A stretch of 63,138 nucleotides of DNA, filler included, from Polymyxa betae A26-41 (Eukaryota > Protista > Endomyxa: Phytomyxea): the NCBI GenBank assembly GCA_003693705.1. It is 5 parts of 5 records of this genome, joined end to end, with 100 filler letters (N's around TTAATTAATTAA, not from the genome) between each part and the next. Parts side by side here need not be neighbours in the genome. Positions count along the whole stretch, not along the records: positions 13,390 to 40,473 come from RBZT01000693.1; 4 more parts are not named here. One strand, written 5' to 3'. Numbering within the stretch: position 1 is the first letter of the stretch; every line of letters begins with the position of its first letter. The notes below the pieces were generated by a model. It was not told the DNA's origin. It did no database searches and saw only the letters and a list, made by a program, of their open reading frames with translations. The position numbers and the translations under genes were made by a program. This document shows, piece by piece, positions 4,059-55,051 of the stretch.

Positions 4059-7000
4059 ATGGTTTGCGTTGGCGACGATTCCCCCCTGTCCGTATGCATA
4101 CCCATCCACGGAGTCCGAGAATCTGCGCTTCACGAGTCAGACGACAGACATTGGGGCTCCTCTTCGTCAATGACGGGATCGGCGATCTGTATCATCGTCG
4201 TGTATGCGCTGCTGCTAATACCGGGCTCGTCCAGCTCCGTCTCTAAGCGGCTTCGTGATCATGTAAGCTGCCCGATACTGCCGACGTCGTCTGTGGCGGA
4301 GCCCAAGGTTCATGTCCGTGTCCAAGCAGAGACCTCGGAGCCGGAATATCAAGACCAACTCGGCCATCCAATCGAATCTCCAAAATCTATCTTGCATGTA
4401 ACTTGGCATAATTTTCGTTGCAAAGCCGATTTTGATATGTTCTTAGGAATTCTATAGCAAGACTGATTGTGAAGACGATATGGTCCTGCCTACTAAATAT
4501 TTTCCAACAAGAAAATCTTCAAAAGTTGGTTTGTTTATTGTGTATTTTCAAGATCAAAATAGCATTTTAATCTGCGATTTTTCATTTTCTTTTTTCTCGT
4601 TTTCCGTCTATGTCTCTCTTATACTTACTGAATCATCGTGCAGCCGTCCAGACCCGAAGAGCGCTCCCGCCAGCAAGATCACCATCGTCTGTTAATCGTC
4701 ACCAATCGTCTGCCAATGTCTGTGGAGAAGAAGGGTGCTGTAGAATCGTGGCCCTGCTCGATGAGCTCTGGCGGGTTGGTCTCTGCATTGACCGCTGTCA
4801 CCAATACCGACATGATATGGATTGGTTGGCCTGGAGCTGAAATTTCCCATCCAGAAGAGCAACGGGTAGGGCTCATTGCTGCTAAATCGCTCTATTCTGA
4901 CTTTTTCTAAAGCTGATCTCGAAGAAATTGATGAAGAAATTCTACCATCCTGTGTTTTTAACCCAGCACATGATCGATATGTACTATAGCGGCTACTCAA
5001 ACGATGTGCTTTGGCCATTGTTTCATTATCTCATATTACCTACAGATCAGCTCAAGAAATCCGGCATGCTATTCGAAGTTTACGAAGCTGCTAATCGCAT
5101 GTTTGCCGAGGAAGTTTTAAATGTTGGAAGTTTTTCTCGAAGTTTTCGTATATTTATTCTGCCCTTTATAGGTTTATCGGCCCGGTGATTTTGTCTGGAT
5201 TCATGATTACCATTTGATGCTTCTTCCTGGGATGCTTCGCCGTGCTTGCCCTGATATGAAGATTGGATTCTTTCTACACACTCCCTTCCCTTCGTATGTC
5301 ACTCTCGTTCATGCATGCTGCATCTAATTGCTTTCAGATCGGAAGTTTTTCGCCTGCTTCCACAAAGAACAGGTAAGATTTTTTTGCGATATTTTCTGAA
5401 ACTTTTCGAATATTCATTCTTCCTTTAGTGCTTCTTCGTAGCTTGCTGTCATCCGACCTGATTGGGTTTCAAGTTTTTGATTACTGCAGGTAGGCAAGCG
5501 CCCTTTATTACAACACTATTTCTTATTGGTTCTGTCAGGCATTTCTCCAGTGCTTGTACTCGGCTATTACGGCTGGATTCCAGTCCATCCGGGACCCAAA
5601 ATCTGCCACCAATCGACGCCTTTCCTATTGGGATCGAGCCTCGCCGATTCATGGTATTTGCCATCACTTTCTGTCTATGTATTATTCACAAGCTTGTATC
5701 AGGATGCTCTATCAAGTCCGGACGTACAGCAGCACATCGCCGAGATTCGAAGACAGTTTCCCGGCCAGAAGATCATCATCGGAATTGATCGCCTCGACTA
5801 CGTCAAAGGCATCCCGCTTAAGATCGACGCATTCGAACATTTCTTAAAAGAGAATCGCCAATGGTATGTCAGGCTCTGCTACTGCTATATGACCTGATCA
5901 TTCTCCAAGGAGAGGCAAAGTCGTACTGGTCCAGATCGCCATCCCATCTCGAACTGAAGTTCCGGAATATCAAGTATCTTTCGCCCGATTTTTCGCTTTC
6001 CGTTTGTGACTATTGTACAGAAACTCGCTCGAGATATTCGCGAACAGGTCCGCCGTGTTAATGAAGGTTTCGTGTCGGATGGAGGTCCTCCAATACACTA
6101 TGTGGAGCAGTCGATCGTGTTCGCTCAGGTTCGGGATGCTCTCTATCGCTGTCGTGAAACGATTCTGATTGTATTCCAGCTGGCTGCGCTTTACACAGTA
6201 GCCGATATGTGCCTGATTACATCGCTACGAGATGGCATGAACTTGGTCTCATTCGAGTTTATAGCAAGCCAGACGCCGGCTCATGGAATCGGCGTGCTGA
6301 TGCTGAGCGAATTCTGTGGCGCCTCCCAATCACTCGGTATTGCTGCCTCACATGTCGCGACATTTTCATCATGCTGTCAACAGGCGCCGGCGCCATTGTA
6401 GTGAGTCCATGGGACATTCACGAAACCGCCAAATCTATCAAGTTTGCATTAGAAATGAGTCCCGCACAAAGAGAGGTTTCTATTCGATGTTGCTGTTGCT
6501 GTTGCACTGAAATGTTTCTCACAGGAGTATCATCGTTATGCTATGCAATATGTTGCTACGCATACAGCCCAGCATTGGGCCGAATCATTCATCGCGAAAC
6601 TGAATCTCGCCAAGAATGTCCCGTCCCCGCCTTTACCGCAAAGCCTGAACGTAGACGAGGTCGTCCGCGAATTCCGAAGGCGATCATCGTAAGCAAAATT
6701 CACTCAGTATCTGAGTTCGATCTAAATACAACCTTTTAGATCGCATAGAGTGATTGTCCTTGGCATGGTTGGAACTTTAACCCATCTTCGTTCAAGGTTA
6801 GTTCAATATTGTTTGGGTTTAGGGGTTTTTGATTTTGTAATAGTGGAATGACATTCCAAATGTACGAACGGTTCTTGAAATGCAATCCTCGTACGTTGGC
6901 CGCTCTCCGGAAGCTTGCTGAAGATAAGAATACCACGGTTGTGATTCTGACATCTCGTAAGCGAGCTGTGTGCGAATCCGTGCTGGGCAGTACGCCTGCA

Positions 7001-7895
7001 TGGGTCGCCGCAGAAAACGGTTTCTTCCTCAAAGCTGGTGTGGACGCGAAATGGGAGCCGCTGCAGGTAGTGATCAGTTTTCATCTGCTGAATGCGTTTC
7101 TTAAGTTTTATCACAGGAACCGCTGGATTGCTCGTGGATGGAAGAAGTTCAGAAAGTGTTCGATTATTTCACAGAACGAACACCCAGGTCTTTTACAGAA
7201 AACGTATCATCAATGGTTATTTTTTCGTTTTTTTTTAATGTTTCTCAGGAAGGTACGTCTATGACCTGGAACTACGAAGATTCTGATCCGCGATTTGCTG
7301 AATCGCAAGCCAGAGACCTAGTCATGCACCTGGTAGCAAATTCGCTCTGATAACTCCTTTCTCGTATTTGATTTCTTTATAAAGGTTGCAGGTCCACTTG
7401 TAAATACATCGACGGAGGTGATCGATGGCTGTAAACGTGTGCGGGTACGACCTGCTGGTTTCACAAAAGGTTGGTGTGCCTCCTACGTTGGGCTAATCTC
7501 TGATTACCTGTTTCAGGAGCCATGTGTAAACGCATATTTAATTTGATCCAAGCTCGGCATCAGGATATTGGATTCGTACTTTGTATCGGTGCATTCCTGA
7601 GTCGAGATGAAGATGTTTTTGAGGCCCTTTCTTATGGTTCATTTAATGAGGTCTGGATGATTGGCTTGATCTGACAACCCCACTGCTTAATTTGGTTTTC
7701 TAGAAGGAGATGCAAAGATTTCCTCCTTCAAAAAGAATGCCACAAGTTCGCTTGCCTGAACAGTGTTTTGTCACGACCGTTAATGTTGGCGGTAAAGCCG
7801 GCAAAGCACAGAAGTTTATCCGAAGCTCGTTGGAAGTTGAAAGCTTTCTGAGAAGTCTAGCCGAGACTCTTGGCTCGGATGGCACAACTGTTTAA
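4059..7895 (+). CDS. TPS1: Trehalose-6-phosphate synthase (GT20) fused to a degenerate HAD trehalose-phosphatase domain, about 21 exons
   Basis: Spliced GT-AG exons give [90 protein letters not shown], then [15 protein letters not shown] and RDEDVF; stop at 7893-7895. The start is uncertain (ATG 4059, 4170 or 4480). Confidence 0.93.
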
Positions 7896-13389: not shown

Positions 13390-14082
13390 GCAAAGTAGTT
13401 AGTTCCCTTCGTCCCCTTCATCTAACTTCAGTCGCTCCCCTTAATTACACATTCAATGTTGGCGCAGCCCGTGGTCCAACCTGAATGCGAAATTATGCTA
13501 CCCCAAGTTTCGGTAGTCATTTGAGTTCCACCAGTATTTTTTGTATGGAGGCTCCGCCGCATTTTTGGCGCAGCCCACCGTTAGTTTTGGTGAAACTGCG
13601 GGTGACTACCGGCAATTTGGCTACGTTTACGGATACCTCTACAATATAGATAGAGTGACATAGTTTAGGCCACGGCTTTCAAAAGCGCGGGCAATTGGAA
13701 CGTGTTTGGGGTTTCTGCACCAGTCGGCGCTCGACACTGGAAGCTTCCCATGTCACACATGTGCATGTGCGACATGTTTGGCGGTGCATCAATAGCTCAG
13801 CGCGCCGTATAATTCGACCCAGCTCATGCGGCAGCTTGAAGAGGGACAGCCGCCTCCTCGTAGGATCATTCTTCAATCTTATTAGGGGGTATCAAAGTTG
13901 AGTCGCCGCAATTTTTTTGATTCCGATCTATCAGCGCAGAGTTTCAACGTAAGATTCGAATCTAACTTAAGATTCACTTCCAGGAGGTGAATCTTACTCC
14001 GAAAATCGAATCTTAAAAGACGCAGCGGGAATAAACACAGAAAAATTTGCTGGTTATCATCGTTTCCATCCGTTTGAGTCAC

Positions 14083-15401
14083 ATGGTTCCTCCTTCAGAC
14101 TCGCGATCAGCTACGCCAGCGAATGCTAAAAACAGCCGCAGGCGAACCTCAAAGCCAGAATTCCTTGCGATGATCCCATTCCTGGAAGTTCGTGAGAACT
14201 TCTTTTTGATCGAAGGAGGGGCAGCCGCCGGTAAGCCTATGACATCTGGGCAGAAATTGTCCAAAAACGAAGGCTATAAAGCTCTCGCCCTGCATGTCAA
14301 TGAGCCGATCAGTGATAAAAGCTGGACTTGGACAACTGATGGCGCGAAACGTCGCTACGCCAGTTTCAAGAAGCTCTACAGAATAACGAGAGCTCTAATA
14401 GGAACAACAGGGTTCGGTTTAACTGAAAAAGACAATGCTAAAGGAATTACGACTGTCGAGCAAAAACTCGAGTCGCGGTGCTTGTTCTATTCTGGAATGG
14501 ATGCACAGTTCGGTTTCCGACAAAATATTAATCGATCCGTTATTCAGGAAACAGGAGTTGATGTGGGACCTGGGATCTTCAATTCGCCTCATACATGGAA
14601 CGAATCTTACTCATTTTCTGAAGATGATTCCAGCGACGTTGATAAAAATGAATACACCATTGCGTGTAAAGCTAGCTACATTGTAAATCGCAAGAAGCAC
14701 CTGATAAATTTCCAGGTACAATGAATAAGGATCGAGAGGGCAACAACTATAGACAGGAGTCAAATGCAGGTAACGACTGTGAAACAGATGGCTTTGCTAA
14801 TGATGTGCCTAATTGTGCAGTCTCGGATAGATACGCTGCAGAAGAAATCGTCGCCAGCGGGGCAGTTGTGATGCCTCATATCCAGTCCTCACTCAATCTG
14901 CCCTTTCCAGGTAAATTATTGTCACGCTATTAACTCACCGAATTGCTGACACCGATAAGATCGCGTCGACGTAGAGAATGAAGCACGGGCTGAAGAGAGT
15001 ATGCGGCGTGCAGATGTCACTGATTCGGAAAGCGACAGTTGTGATACCGATACAGATTAGAGGCACGCCGTCGTGCGAACCTTGAAAAACCTATTTCGAA
15101 AAAACCCAAGACACCGAAGCCGAAATGACTGGATTTTACAATCGGCAAAAACAATGCATCTGTGACTTCCAGTCAGTCCAAAAAAGCGAAGAAGGATTTC
15201 ACAACCACGTTTGCAGAAACGCAACATGCTTATCTTGAGTTTAAAATGGAAACGCTTCAAACCGAAAGGGAGAAGTTAAAAAACGAGCAGAGCCTCGCTG
15301 AGTAGATTGCCAAAGGCAATATGGTGTCTTCTCTGCTGAGCACTGGACCGAGCATCGACGTCATTAAGGAGGCCTTGAACCTGGTATTCCCTGATAGTTA
15401 A
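14083..15401 (+). pseudogene. Harbinger Myb/SANT-like DNA-binding gene
   Basis: WTTDGAKRRYASFKKLYR...TGFGLT...CLFYSGMDAQFG; intron-like breaks and internal stops. Confidence 0.7.
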
Positions 15402-15423: not shown

Positions 15424-16697
15424 TTAATCATAAAACCCGAAATACTCCAAAACTTCCTTCTGAATCTTACATCGCCATTCTTTTAGGGTGCAACTTTCGT
15501 TTCGACGCCCATGTATTTCCAAATCATATTGGGTAAGATCATGAATTTGGGCTTCTGACTCATAATCAAGATGGTCTGCTGCTACCCGCAGACCATTAAC
15601 CATGCTGTGCAAAACGCAACAGGCAGCAATCCAATCGCAAGCATAGGAGACATCCTTCGGCATATTGATAGTAATCGGTAAGCCTCGTAACGACTGCCAG
15701 TGCTGTTCCAAGATCCCGTTGCCATGCTCAGACACCACCCGCCCCCGGGATAATCGCTTATTGAACTCTTCATTTTCTGGGAGCGATGTTGCGGGTTGAC
15801 GGTACGGAACAAGCATCTGTTTGAATAACGAAAACCCAGAATCTCCAAACTGGTACTCCCCATCGGAGAAGAACCTTTCTGGATTCTTATCAACGGCACC
15901 ACTTTCCCATACTGCTGTGCCATGAACCGAACCGGGCCATCCGGCTATTACAAAACGAATGCTTCTGTTCTGATCAAACGTTAGCATGACGTTCATGGAA
16001 TATGTACACTTGCGACTGAAGTATACTTCGCCTTCAAGGGTAGGACGCTGAATAACCCAACATGTGTTCCATCAGTAGAAGCAACACAGCACTGAAATCC
16101 AAACTTTTCATGTGTCCTTGCGCGCTTAGAGCCCGTCTCTCTTCTACATCCGGCCAATAAATATACTTTCTGCTCAGGCTCTATAACCCATGGGTAACTC
16201 CCTTAGTATAAAGCACGACACTACCATAGCCTACTCCTTTGGAAACGGCTACCATTCCAATCGTCGAGCCAGTATTATGCACAGGCTAGCTGAACCCAGA
16301 CAGGGGCCTGGGGATTCTGCGATTCATTCTGGAACACAGGATGATCTAAGAAAAATAAAACGTGTATTCGAGTGACTTATACATGCTGAAACCAAACTTT
16401 GAATTTCACGCAGAAAGCGAAAGTTTCCTGACATACTCTAAGTTCTTGCTGGAACTGCCGAACTCCAAGATGTGGCAGGAGCCGCAGATGGCCTAGATTC
16501 TTTGGCATGGCCTGTCGAAAATTAAAATACCGTTGCTCCGGCACCGAGGCATAGATCGTCATCAGTTTTTTCGCTGTCTTCCTGAAATGCTTGGAATCTT
16601 CAGCGTCCAAGCCTGGACAGGCAAGCTGAGTAGCAAGATAGCGAATGGCATCTTCAAGCTGTCGTAAGCATTGATATCGCTCTGAATTTCGAACCAT
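15424..16697 (-). pseudogene. Harbinger DDE_Tnp_4 transposase
   Basis: DGTH, GWPGSVH, GDSGF, RVVSEHGNGIL, ACCVLH motifs; frameshifted. Confidence 0.88.
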
Positions 16698-16898: not shown

Positions 16899-17731
16899 TA
16901 GGGCTCCGATCGGGTTCGGGTAGTGTCCGAAAAACGCGGGTCGGGTCGGGCTCGGGTAGCGGGACGATACCCGACCCAACTATCCGACTGTATCCGACGG
17001 TTAATAATTTGAGCTGTACAAACTGCGCACGGATTTACGCTCAGCTAACATTTGTGTATTTTGTCAAGTTGCATCATTGCAATGGTCACGAATATGGCAA
17101 CCCGCAAGAGCAAAGCACCCATTTCGTCAACGACGCTTTCGCAACTATTCCAAAAAAAGACTTCAATATTGATTACTCTGACATTATCGAACTTGTTTCA
17201 CTTCTGATAATCTCTTATTGGGAGAACAAGTGACCGATTGGGAGAAATATGTACTGCTGAACAGGTCCAAACCGCTACCACAGGAGAAGCTGGTGATGAT
17301 TCTTCTCTTTTCACGTACCTCGATGTTCTCTCATTGCGTTTGTGAAGGCCAATAATGGATGAGGCCGACAAATATTTGAACTTGTGATCCTCTATATTAT
17401 TACATCGCATGCAATGCAGTTTCACATCTTTTGTCGAAAGAGACATACTGTCAATTCCTGGATCGTCTGTGTCGGATTTTAGAAATTTTCAATGGTGGAC
17501 ACAATGTGCTTAGACTGCGTCGACGTTCCCTTCAGCCTGAGACACTAAGTGCATTGATATTAGGGAATAACTCACTTATAACGCACCCAATCAAGATGTG
17601 TATACAGCGTTTCTGTGAACATTTTCTCTCGCCATACAATTGTCGGGTTGCTACCCGACCCGTCTAAAAATGTCGGGTCGGGTTCGGGTATGGGGCTGGT
17701 ATCCGACCCGACCGACCCGATCGGAGTCCTA
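16899..17731. mobile_element. Non-autonomous hAT derivative
   Basis: 17-bp TIRs TAGGGCTCCGATCGGGT (1 mismatch), CGGGT/ACCCG subterminal repeats, internal RRRSLQPETLSAL dimerisation remnant; no TSD match. Confidence 0.8.
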
Positions 17732-29255: not shown

Positions 29256-29399
29256 TAGGCGGTAACAAAATTAGATTTTGTGCGCTCCCGGAGAATCGAT
29301 TCTCCCACGGGATTCAGCAGATTTTTCGATTCTCCCGGGAGAATCACGGAGATAAAATAGCGTGATCGATTTTCGGGATTGATCTGGTCATGATGTGTG

Positions 29400-30626
29400 G
29401 TGTCTGTCTCGAATATATCATCCATTTCTACTATGAACGCACCTGTTATCCAAGCTGCCGCTTCGCAGCCACGTGCTGTGGCTGCTAATTTTCCTCAGAC
29501 AGCAAAGCAACCCTTGCGACAGGTTTTCCTTCCAATAAGAAGAAAACAACAGAGCCTGGAGCTGCACTCTCCATGACAAACGTGTTTTGATGCAGTTAAT
29601 GAGTCTATTGCACGCAATTTTTCCAAACGCACTGACGCATTTTATTACAACAGTGGCGCACTATTACGCCGTCACTGGCGCTGTTTTTGACTCGAAACTG
29701 AGCGTGGCTGCGCAGACACCGCACGCACTCCATGCACCCTCTTGTCCTCATTCCTTTCACCTTTTATTGTCGACTTCACACCAAGATCAGTCTTGCGCCT
29801 GGGCATGGCTATGACTAGAGGCGATATGATGAGGTGTACGGCCCTCTGTCGCGAGGGCCGGTCTCCTGAAATAATGGATAACCCCTCTTCTCTTAACGCC
29901 TACTTGTATGTCTGAAGCCGTTACCTGGGCCATCCTGCAATGGTATCAGAAAGTCTACATGCTCTTTTCCGATGTCTATTCAAGCCAAGTGTAAAATCCA
30001 TACGGCCCGTTTTAGGGTGCTTAATACCGGTGGATCTTGGCTGCTGTCGGCATAGAGCTGTAGAATCTTACCAATTGTACAGCTACCTGTGAAAGGGCCG
30101 GTCTCCTGGACAAAATGATGACTAGTGGTCTGTGTTTTACGTTCTTCTGACTTTTTTGGAAAATGATAGTACCTGTAACAGCCGCCTGAAAGCAAATATT
30201 CTTGTCGGGATGAATTAGATTGCATATGAAAGAGATTCCTGGCAATTATAATTGGATTGCTTACTGGTGATGTATTGGCTGATCTGGCTAGGCTGCGAAT
30301 AACTTTGACAAATAAACTTTAAAAACAGATATCACTTTACTTTATGTTCGAGATTGATTGATTAAAGCTAGCTACGATTTTTATTGTAAAAATTTAATTT
30401 ATCCTGATTGCGTTTCTCTGCCATTATTGTGATTACATGCGTTCTGGATATGTAAATTTTAGGCAGATGCTCATGCAAATATCTGCAATGCTCCGCAAAT
30501 ATCTGATAGCAGAAACTGCGATTTCACGCATTTCGACATGCAAAATTCTGCGTGAGCTTGCGAAATGGCCGTGAAAATTCGCAGGTCCGAAAATGCGGTA
30601 AAACGCAGGTCTGCGCAGTTCCGGTG
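29400..30626 (-). mobile_element. CACTA/CMC-like element copy 1 (terminal part)
   Basis: Minus-strand terminus CACCGGAACT at 30626; carries the conserved hairpin and an accessory gene fragment MESAAPGSVVFFLLEGKPVARVALL homologous to 55475-55696. Confidence 0.75.
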
Positions 30627-36439: not shown

Positions 36440-37563
36440 GATTAATATACAGTAAATGTTTTTACTAAGACCCTGAAACATTTTCTCAGGGTTTAGGGTG
36501 CTAGAGACCTTCAGCGTTCAGGGTCTTATTCTTAGGCCTTCAGCAGCGTTTCAGGGTCATAACATTATGAAAAAGATAGCGGTTCTTATTATTGTTTGAG
36601 ATGACCAAAGAAAATGACGGTGATGATTTGGACTTGCTTGATGTCACAATCAATGACGATTCTGTGTCGTTCTGGAATCGATATGCGGTTTCCGAAGAAA
36701 ATCGTTTTTTAACTGACGGGTGGCCTGATGACCAAATTCAGACGGACGGAACTCCCTGCGCTTCACAGGCTGCCAAGGATACGCTTCATCGAAACGATCC
36801 CAAACATAAAATAAGCGCAAGAGCGCTGCGAAGACAGAGATGAATGCCACACGGCTGAGTTTCCGTTCGGAACCGACCCCGCAGTTTAAGAAGGGAAAAA
36901 CAGACTTTACAACGGCATGGATCGAGATGCAGAGTCAACATCTTGCTTTGGAACAGGAAAGATCTCGGCGAGATCTGGAGTTTCAGCAATGACAGGCAGA
37001 GCTCAATGCTGTGAAACTGAAAGAGGGTCACCGGTTGGCCACTCAGATAGCCAAAGGCAACTTTATTGCTGATCTCATGAAAAGCGGTCGTAGTGTGACC
37101 GAAATCAAAGAAATGGTGAGCATGGTTTTTCCTGACAATCAACCACGACAGTGGCGTCTAAAAACGTCATCATTGATCAGTGCAGAATTTCTCAACGGTA
37201 TCAGATATTTCCGTTTTTGTGATGCTTTCCAGAAACTATCACAAAAACCGAAATACCTGATACCTTTAAATCATCTGTCTCTTATGCTCATATCTATATT
37301 GGATATATTAAACAAAATCCCAGTACTGCAGTACTTTCTGTTGAATAGATCGTCTCCAATCCGAGATCGTTCCATTGCTGTGCGCTCCGTAATCTTCGGT
37401 GTCGCATGATTCTTCTGAAATTATTCCCTGTACCTCTCGGTTGTCCATGTCATCGGCAGGAATTTGAAGAGCTGTAACCATATTATGCAATACCTAACAG
37501 GCCAGAATCCAGTCACACGCCTTGTTGACATGGATGGGCTTGTTGATCGAAACTGGAAGCCCT
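36440..37563. mobile_element. Truncated Harbinger remnant related to 13884-16849
   Basis: Plus-strand QIAKGNFIADLMKSG...VFPDN matches IAKGNMVSSLLSTG...VFPDS near 15300; minus-strand LPVSINKPIHVNKACDWILAC.VLHNMV matches the transposase C-terminus near 15600. Confidence 0.75.
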
Positions 37564-39600
37564 CACCGTAACTCCGTGAGCCTGCTTTTTTCTACGTTTG
37601 CCCTGCCAATTGGACCCCGAAAATTCGCAGGTGTACAGAGGCAGAAACTCATCGGAAAATGCGTGGTTACGCATTTTTGTTATTGCATAGATTGAAAGAA
37701 CATTTGCTGTACATTGCGGAATACGGTAAACTGATGTTTTGCAGAAAACGCCTCGAGTTCGCATGCAAACACAGAAAACGCAGCTTTGCTTATATTCGAC
37801 AATTGATGAGGTGACTTTATCCAGCGTTCTGAAAAGTCGTGCATTTTTATTACTAAATATTGCAGGTCGAAAAATCGTATATACACAAATCTCATACAAA
37901 TCGCGATATCCACCCTCTTGATCTTGATATCATCTATAAACACGTTTAACGGCAATGTCGAATACAGTTTTCCGGCATTTGATAGTCGAAGTTTTGAAGT
38001 GAGCCTTGATGGTGGAACGCGCGGGACACAATTAGCACGTAGCACAGAACTGAAGGTCATCCGTTATTTCAGGAGACCATCCCTCGAATACGAGAACAGT
38101 ACTCCAGTCTGGTTACTATACAGCGTTATTCCGGCAGCAGCCAAGATCCATCAGTATTAAGCACCCTAAGCTCGGGCCGTATGGAATTTTACACTTGGCT
38201 TTGAGACACCGCAATAAGCATGTACGCTTCTCATCGCCCATTTACGCTTATTTCCTCCTTGATTTATAGCGGCAGATAACAAAAGAAACTGTCGATAAAA
38301 CACTTGGGAGGTCATCCATTATTTCAGGCGACCGGCCCTCGTACTGAGAGCCGTACATCCCATCTTCTTTATCGTCTTCCGCAGCTTGTACGAACTGCAG
38401 GGGCCCAATGCCCGGACAGATCTGAAGTCAAGCTCTTGGTCGGGCAGATGTGGGAGTGTGGCTTAGATGCCTTTTTGGATGCGACGAAGTTTGAGGTTGA
38501 CATCAAGCCAAGAGGTATTCAATAACACTAGGTAGAGTGGTCCGCCTCGGACTGTGCAACTATCAGTTGCTGGTTTAAATTGATACGAAAAGGTCACATA
38601 TACAAATGTGCGCAGTCAGACGTGACGCATTCATATGAAATTTAAGTCACACAAATCGCCAATTTCAGATTGGAAGATTCCTTGCTGATTCGATTGAAAT
38701 TTAGCAGTATTTCGCTCACTTGCATTTCGAATAATCACTTCAAGAAAATTCTGGTCGCTCTCTTCCATTGTTAATAAACACAGATGCCTGTAGTTAGGCG
38801 GGAATGCAGAGATTTACTTTTGCGCAAGACCAAGTTTGCAAGAGCTTTATCGTTTTTGATTCAATGGACACAGCTGCAGCAGGCACCGAAGGATTTTACG
38901 TAATCAACAAAGAGCCGGAGGCCAGGGTGGAACTCTTAGTTGCTGAGATCGATGCAAGGGAGCATTGCGTTAGGGTCCATTGTGAAGATGTAGATCTGCG
39001 AACACATCGTGCTGTTCGAGTGACCAGGGTTTTGGCAAAAACAGAAATCCCATTGGTCCGAACTAGTGGTTCCAATGAAAAAGTTCTCAGCAAAGGGTTA
39101 CGTTTCATCGCTGATCGGAATGATATTCGCTACGAAATTCCTAAGAAGGGTCTTCCAGCTGAAGTCATCTGGGTTTTGCAGACATCTCACTGTCACATTC
39201 TTTAGGTAGAAAGCGAGTGCGATCTGACGACCTCACATTATCTGAAAGCCCTGATGTGTATTGGAAACCGTGAAAAAAAAAACGCTCACTAGGGACGAGC
39301 TTGATGAACTGAAAATGGAGACTGCAAGTCAATGACCCCGGAGCGAAGGCTGATGTGCCAGTTGATTCGAGATCAAATCAAGTTCCAAAAGAAAGACCTG
39401 AAATTCCAGAGTGATTGAACGTTTCGACAAACCGTTTTCTAGCATTAATCCTGAGACAATCGAGGCTGAAGCTGAACGTTTGTTGAATGAGATTAACCGC
39501 AAGTTTCCGAAGGCCAGGGCTAACAAAGAGCTGGTTCAAAAAGGTAAGCTGAACAAATTTAGAACGTCTCTCGTGAGTGTAGCAGGCTCACACTAGCAAG
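37564..39600 (+). mobile_element. CACTA/CMC-like element copy 2 (terminal part)
   Basis: Terminus CACCGTAACTCCGTGAGCCTGC aligns with copy 1 CACCGGAACTGCGCAGACCTGC; has the hairpin and an accessory gene at 38804-39596. Confidence 0.75.
38804..39596 (+). pseudogene. Uncharacterised accessory gene of the CACCG-ended element
   Basis: MDTAAAG...ARVELL...VHCEDVD...KGLRFI and EAERLLNEINRKFPKA match blocks at 55475-56220. Confidence 0.6.
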
Positions 39601-54763: not shown

Positions 54764-55051
54764 ATGGCCACTGTACATCTGTGATTCGACAGCAGCCAAG
54801 TTCCACCGGTACTAAGCACCCTCAAGCGGACCGTATGGATGTTTACACTTGACTTTACAGACATCGAAAAACAACCATGCAAGCTTCCTTTGCACCATGA
54901 GCGATTTACAATTGGTATGGTCATTGTACATCTGTGATTCGACAGCAGCCAAGATCTACCGGTATTAAGCACCCTCAAGCGGGCCGTATGGATATTTACA
55001 CTTGACTTGACAGACATCGAAAACAACCATGCAAGTTTCCTTTGCCATGAG
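54764..55051. repeat. Tandem duplication, 153-bp period, of the conserved hairpin unit
   Basis: 54764-54901 is closely similar to 54917-55051. Confidence 0.92.

Follow-up and report, generated by a model that had tools for sequence, protein, structure and literature searches.

The window is a 63,138-nucleotide stretch of Polymyxa betae A26-41 DNA made of five joined parts. The piece from RBZT01000693.1 (positions 13,390 to 40,473) is a nest of transposon fragments, among them a Harbinger-type DDE transposase, Ty3 and Ty1 reverse transcriptases and two copies of a CACTA element. The Harbinger-type DDE_Tnp_4 gene (15424–15996) has a probable partner ORF at 14047–14724 and lies beside a pair of 41-nt direct repeats beginning GTCGGGTCGGG (16940–16980 and 17672–17712).

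CACTA copy 1 is on the minus strand and copy 2 on the plus strand. The left terminal inverted repeat (TIR) of copy 1 (CACCGGAACTGCGCAG, 30611–30626, minus strand) recurs at either end of full-length copies that are flanked by 3-bp target duplications; that of copy 2 (CACCGTAACTCCGTGA, 37564–37579, plus strand) was assigned from the terminus seen in the sequence and from full-length copies. The first gene of the element, gene 1, is TnpA-like. In copy 1, gene-1 comparison and profile matching identified its truncated start, carrying an in-frame stop (29467–29574, minus strand). In copy 2, a profile match and a predicted model placed its N-terminal domain, a DUF8039/Tnp1-En/Spm-like beta-barrel, at 38864–39148 (plus strand). 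At the truncation point of copy 1 (29296–29346) there is a short direct repeat of palindromic GAATCGATTC-like units, possibly the end of another element.

The CACTA host element

A genome search returned about 17 loci, and longer cuts yielded five complete elements of 7.0–8.8 kb. The family is one of 8–9 kb elements, about 40 copies of which carry the cassette described below. All five carry CACCG(G/C/T)AACT at both ends, the terminal inverted repeats of a CACTA/EnSpm element, and four are flanked by 3-bp target duplications (TTT, CGT, CTG and AGG in L030, L033, L035 and L036, respectively); L031 has none. A leader of 0.9–1.55 kb is followed by gene 1 and then by a decayed transposase, two exon pieces of which, searched apart, matched PF02992 below the cut-off (E = 0.007 and 0.044).

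Gene 1 had no Pfam match by sequence. The model of its N-terminal domain (pLDDT 75) is an SH3/Tudor/KOW-like barrel, a fold class in which nucleic acid binding is frequent, and among its best matches in the Atlas are plant CACTA clusters of the DUF8039 and Transposase_23/24 families (TM 0.60–0.69). The host thus belongs to the CACTA elements, with a TnpA-like gene followed by a probable Tnp2-type transposase, and the CACTA-like assignment of the initial annotation, given the CACCG ends, target duplications and TnpA-like gene, was correct. The right thirds of full elements hold subfamily-specific tandem arrays, of units of about 300 bp in L030 (positions 5300–7700) and of short ATCATCGATGAT-rich units in L031 and L036.

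Two motifs in a one-sided cassette

Within the left end of the element, at a depth of 0.3–1.1 kb, lies a cassette of tandem modules of two motifs, A and B, which are two previously undescribed structured motifs in a DNA transposon. Motif B is the long imperfect hairpin of the initial annotation. Its core was found where it had been reported, at 29941–30073 in copy 1 (element on the minus strand) and 38119–38224 in copy 2 (plus strand), within about 700 nt of a terminus and 550–560 nt inside CACCG(G/T)AACT ends. The first of these assignments is based on folding and multi-copy comparison and the second on a covariance model and the consensus fold. On both sides of this core in the piece is a second repeat, motif A, which was absent from the initial annotation. 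In copy 1, a degenerate, TIR-proximal A at 30066–30133 scored 26.6 bits with covariance model R1, and a second A at 29825–29893 scored 79.1 bits. In copy 2, the TIR-proximal A (38045–38112, 41.1 bits) is partly decayed and the gene-proximal one (38300–38367) scored 76.9 bits. All these features are given on the strand favoured for the RNA, which is antisense to the genes (plus in copy 1, minus in copy 2). The copies at 54764–55051 lie outside the piece and were set aside.

All cassette copies come from one genome. Besides the TIR, the only words common to ten or eleven subfamily leaders were those of motifs A and B. Covariance models gave 60 A and 31 B matches genome-wide, about half of them known by position only, and an exact-pattern search for the B core found 20 copies genome-wide against 0 for the reversed control. 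When covariance-model coordinates were compared by hand with gene-1 profile matches, a cassette lay upstream on the same strand in 31 of the 40 distinct gene-1 loci; eight had no detectable cassette and one was at a contig edge, while seven cassettes had no gene-1 match. The orientation relative to gene 1 was the same in all cases, and a covariance-model scan found no A or B motif at the right end of complete elements. Module orders were A-B-A, A-B-A-A, B-A-A, A-B-A-B, A-B, B-B and A-A-A, so that some elements carry A without B. The lone gene-proximal A of copy 1 (29825–29893) looks recombinant when set against L030:1809–1948, with the 5′ arm of the first tandem A and the 3′ arm of the second. 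In one copy (L027 near 760, G000:C61), two CCCTAA telomere-like units are inserted directly downstream of motif A.

Motif A is a three-way junction of 60–70 nt, in which a closing helix of 5–13 bp and a fixed junction of 4–5 nt join two hairpins, one of 3–9 bp and one with a fixed 9-nt loop. At 29825–29893 these parts are the closing helix, the 5-nt junction UGUAC, the variable hairpin and the conserved hairpin with loop UGAAAUAAU. Core identity between subfamilies was 0.84. In the alignment 86% of cells were paired, compared with about 40% in slid controls, and two-sided changes were seen at 13 of 21 pairs overall, including all seven in the closing helix, a result reached by 0 of 500 shuffles. 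Among 15 non-redundant copies, 69 of 105 cells in the arms were Watson–Crick, against 37 ± 6 when arms were permuted. By parsimony, about 10 compensatory events fall on distinct branches of the tree. The covariation of A is stronger than that of hairpin B; the pairing of its conserved hairpin is predicted rather than proven, since that hairpin is nearly invariant.

Motif B consists of a nearly invariant 34-nt tip (29999–30032 in copy 1, 73.8 bits with covariance model R2; 38149–38183 in copy 2) on a long stem. On the antisense strand the tip reads as a helix with a bulged A, a 9-nt bulge, a 3-bp stem and a loop closed by G..A; this pairing too is a prediction, because the tip is too invariant for covariation. 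The nested stems reported initially are present in the sequence, as are the covarying outer pairs (CGA/TCG versus CGG/CCG, and GCTCT/AGAGC versus TTATT/AATAA). The long hairpin as a whole had been called conserved, which is true of the tip, with 0.89 identity between subfamilies, but not of the stem, which in distant subfamilies has no sequence relationship (0.63 identity versus 0.54 shuffled). The arms nevertheless pair with their own partners better than with those of other subfamilies (p < 1e-5), and in the consensus of the eight alignable copies 7 of 28 pairs showed two-sided change. One B hairpin, that of L039, has a near-perfect stem of 20 bp. Folded singly, the copy at 29941–30073 had a z-score of about −4.5 on either strand, whereas that at 38110–38240 did no better than shuffles (z = +0.6/−0.2). 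The evidence for the hairpin is therefore the multi-copy comparison and not single-sequence folding.

Selection and the favoured strand

The conservation of the cassette was compared with that of its surroundings. Leader flanks were 0.56–0.57 identical between subfamilies, which is the shuffled level (0.56–0.57), and gene 1 was 0.47 identical in amino acids and 0.33 at third codon positions, so the claim that the core exceeds both its flanks and the accessory protein holds, at least for the B tip. The cassette is under selection as a non-coding, single-stranded structure. The covariation sought in a larger copy set was found in the arms of B and throughout the closing helix of A, and the original proposal of a selected RNA or single-stranded DNA structure stands in this sense, except that the hairpin is only half of a two-motif cassette. 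It is highly improbable that the sequence is instead a short coding exon or uORF (in the PPVLSTLKRAVW or VIHYFRRPA frames). Several B changes are synonymous in such a frame, and its third positions (0.81) are less conserved than its first and second (0.94–0.96), but third positions that are truly coding, in gene 1, are far more divergent. Furthermore, B contains indels of 1, 4 and 5 nt that break the reading frame, as had been noted for single-base indels, and these, with one of 3 nt, are located in its small loop; flank stops vary by subfamily; the A frame has a TGA in several copies; and the length of A varies by single bases. Hardly credible at all is an old MITE or captured repeat in neutral decay. 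Its palindromic shape and variable copy number would fit, yet the core is conserved far above synonymous sites, compensatory changes arose independently, and the block has no TIR or target duplication of its own.

The structure is probably read on the strand antisense to the element's genes. In the aligned core columns, non-canonical pairs read A-C rather than G-U on the gene strand in 39 cells to 7, and in 14 columns to 3. The RNAalifold consensus of B was −23.0 kcal/mol antisense and −9.2 kcal/mol sense. On the antisense strand, G-C pairs have repeatedly become G-U, and U-G pairs U-A, and small B loops read G..A in 12 of 15 cases. The initial statement that most substitutions become G-U wobbles on this strand is thus borne out by the core columns and the consensus fold. 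It does not extend to the outer arms, as strand-neutral counts gave no G-U bias (13:10 in the outer arms of B, 3:4 in the closing helix of A). We hold the antisense assignment no more firmly than probable because the outer arms have no preference and the composition of the antisense strand alone favours wobbles. An unpaired UGUA, the word at the core of PUF protein binding sites, occurs on the antisense strand in the A junction and in the B internal loop, in the latter only in eight closely related subfamilies.

Function and likeness to known systems

Free stems combined with fixed loops, bulges and junction, in tandem, imply a fold that presents bases for recognition or catalysis. Our preferred reading, which is a tentative one, is that the cassette encodes an antisense, protein-binding regulatory RNA of the transposon; its transcription, protein partner and regulatory role are all postulated. 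The RNA would be read antisense to both genes, from just upstream of gene 1 outward to the left TIR. Stems would only be required to pair, while the bases of loop, bulge and junction would be kept constant by the need for recognition, most probably through a protein. The candidate binder is the TnpA-like beta-barrel protein of the element or a host RNA-binding protein, and tandem A and B copies may provide avidity. Such an RNA could control the element in cis, by binding or titrating the accessory protein or by marking the outward transcript for processing.

The main rival is that A, B or both form an undescribed class of self-cleaving ribozyme, which would cut transcripts at the left end, whether they run outward or read through. 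The motifs have traits typical of the hammerhead, twister and HDV-like ribozymes of retroelements: they are small, their junction and loop bases are fixed but their stems are free in sequence, they stand as interchangeable tandem copies within a mobile element, and one hairpin shrinks to 3 bp plus a tetraloop. We nevertheless consider it unlikely. A permissive search with Rfam 15 covariance models (E ≤ 10) gave no ribozyme match, nor any family match to the motifs, in line with the initial annotation, which had matched the hairpin to no known family. The known-class descriptors fail: hammerhead (CUGANGA + GAAA core) had one chance match in 12 cassettes; pistol, hairpin, twister-sister and group II domain V fail across copies; and for twister only a loose AAGC word was found, without matching helix and pseudoknot partner. 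Nor is it obvious why a DNA transposon should have to process an RNA intermediate. Somewhat less plausible still is folding on the gene-sense strand. The modules would then lie in the 5′ leader or the first intron of the gene-1/transposase mRNA and would govern its splicing, export or translation. The cassette does sit immediately ahead of gene 1, plant CACTA mRNAs begin close to the left end, Watson–Crick covariation is blind to strand, and there are splice-site-like words in A (TTTCAG|G and CC|GTAC) and B (CC|GTATG); against this, the recurrent non-canonical pairs are A-C on the sense strand and G-U on the other, and the consensus energy is far weaker on the sense strand.

It is quite unlikely that the motifs act as DNA, either as subterminal sites for TnpA or a host factor or as single-stranded or cruciform DNA, with arm symmetry kept by template switching. 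CACTA elements do have subterminal direct and inverted repeats (PMC8978399), CCGG...CCGTA words are common to A and B, B contains CACCGG like the TIR, and G-T is tolerated in DNA too. But the motifs are at one end only and in one orientation, a double-stranded site would not call for arms that stay paired as their sequence changes, around inserts of 45 nt, and the wobbles are strand-asymmetric. A descriptor scan of the cassettes found no rolling-circle nonamer NANTATTAC in a hairpin loop, and no HUH or helicase gene was seen in the element pieces scanned. Very improbable, finally, is the suggestion of the initial annotation that B is a small-RNA precursor, or equally a guide scaffold, with the variable stem as product. 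Long imperfect hairpins, such as the near-perfect one of L039, would suit it. The stem, though, differs in sequence from one subfamily to the next and the tip does not, whereas microRNA precursors show the opposite pattern; some elements carry A alone; and cassette segments, the arms included, match nothing else in their own element, ends included, beyond chance. Outside the CACTA copies, a near-perfect 36-bp hairpin with a 2-nt spacer (37194–37267) had only sub-threshold microRNA-like Rfam scores. Other candidate roles were tried and dropped: a guide to the element ends (no variable segment matching ends or targets), loop–loop kissing of A with B (no complement was conserved) and H/ACA or C/D boxes (not conserved).

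The element shares with CACTA (En/Spm) elements its CACC ends, 3-bp target duplication and TnpA-like second gene, a probable Tnp2-type transposase, and motifs that recur a few hundred nt in from an end, and differs in that the repeats are covarying secondary structures at one end and in one orientation, and in that the TnpA-like gene precedes the transposase. Like the tandem ribozymes of retroelements (hammerhead in Penelope and retrozymes, HDV-like in R2, twister), the motifs are small modular folds with fixed cores, free stems and tandem copies; unlike them, they match no class in sequence or topology and sit in a DNA transposon without reverse transcriptase. Transposon guide RNAs (omega RNA of TnpB/Fanzor, bridge RNA of IS110) are likewise structured non-coding RNAs in DNA transposons, here predicted, but no RuvC nuclease or recombinase ORF was seen in the element pieces scanned, the cassette does not abut the end, and no segment matches ends or targets. 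The antisense A hairpin carries an AY-like bulge, placed five bases beyond a paired NGC triplet, and in this it may resemble the U6 internal stem-loop and group II domain V. We treat this as a lead only: the loop has 9 nt and is not a pentaloop, the triplet is mostly GGC in place of AGC or CGC, and there is no ACAGAGA equivalent, no Rfam match and no fit to the descriptor. The roles of triad and bulge in these RNAs have been described (PMC7297123).

Exact-pattern scans of metagenome (two), viral (two) and prokaryote (one) contigs gave 0 matches each, and word searches with gene 1 and with a cassette-spanning frame gave none. Profile searches found only five or six protein relatives, on short metagenome contigs, and those with DNA end before the cassette position. 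No RNA run was among the sequencing runs holding the sequence; the one holder has low-depth, DNA-like contigs with relatives lacking intron joints. No description of such a cassette in CACTA elements was found in the literature, within the limits of the library searched.

In the prevailing view, CACTA elements are run by proteins that bind their DNA ends. A selected modular structure, kept across subfamilies whose proteins share only about 45% identity, suggests either control at the level of RNA or a new ribozyme chemistry. It is doubtful, but a possibility of some weight, that A and B represent catalytic RNA of a new class or serve the CACTA transposase or the TnpA-like protein as a required RNA cofactor; if true, this would be a cut-and-paste DNA transposon that depends for its activity on a structured RNA of its own. 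At 35–70 nt the motifs are amenable to direct cleavage, probing and binding tests, and the two covariance models provide a handle for related genomes.

Between the cassette and gene 1 there is a further candidate DNA-binding site, motif C (GTCCG..CGGA), recognised by eye. It is the palindrome GTCCG-N3-CGGAC at 38540–38552 in copy 2; in copy 1 a C-like candidate site (29717–29738) and a pyrimidine tract together span 29717–29770. Motif C also occurs in the leaders of L031, L033, L035, L036 and L038. It overlaps the reverse of the TIR-proximal ACTCCGT, follows a purine-rich tract and lies about 250–320 nt ahead of the start of gene 1. Motif C and the adjoining tract may possibly constitute a divergent promoter region.
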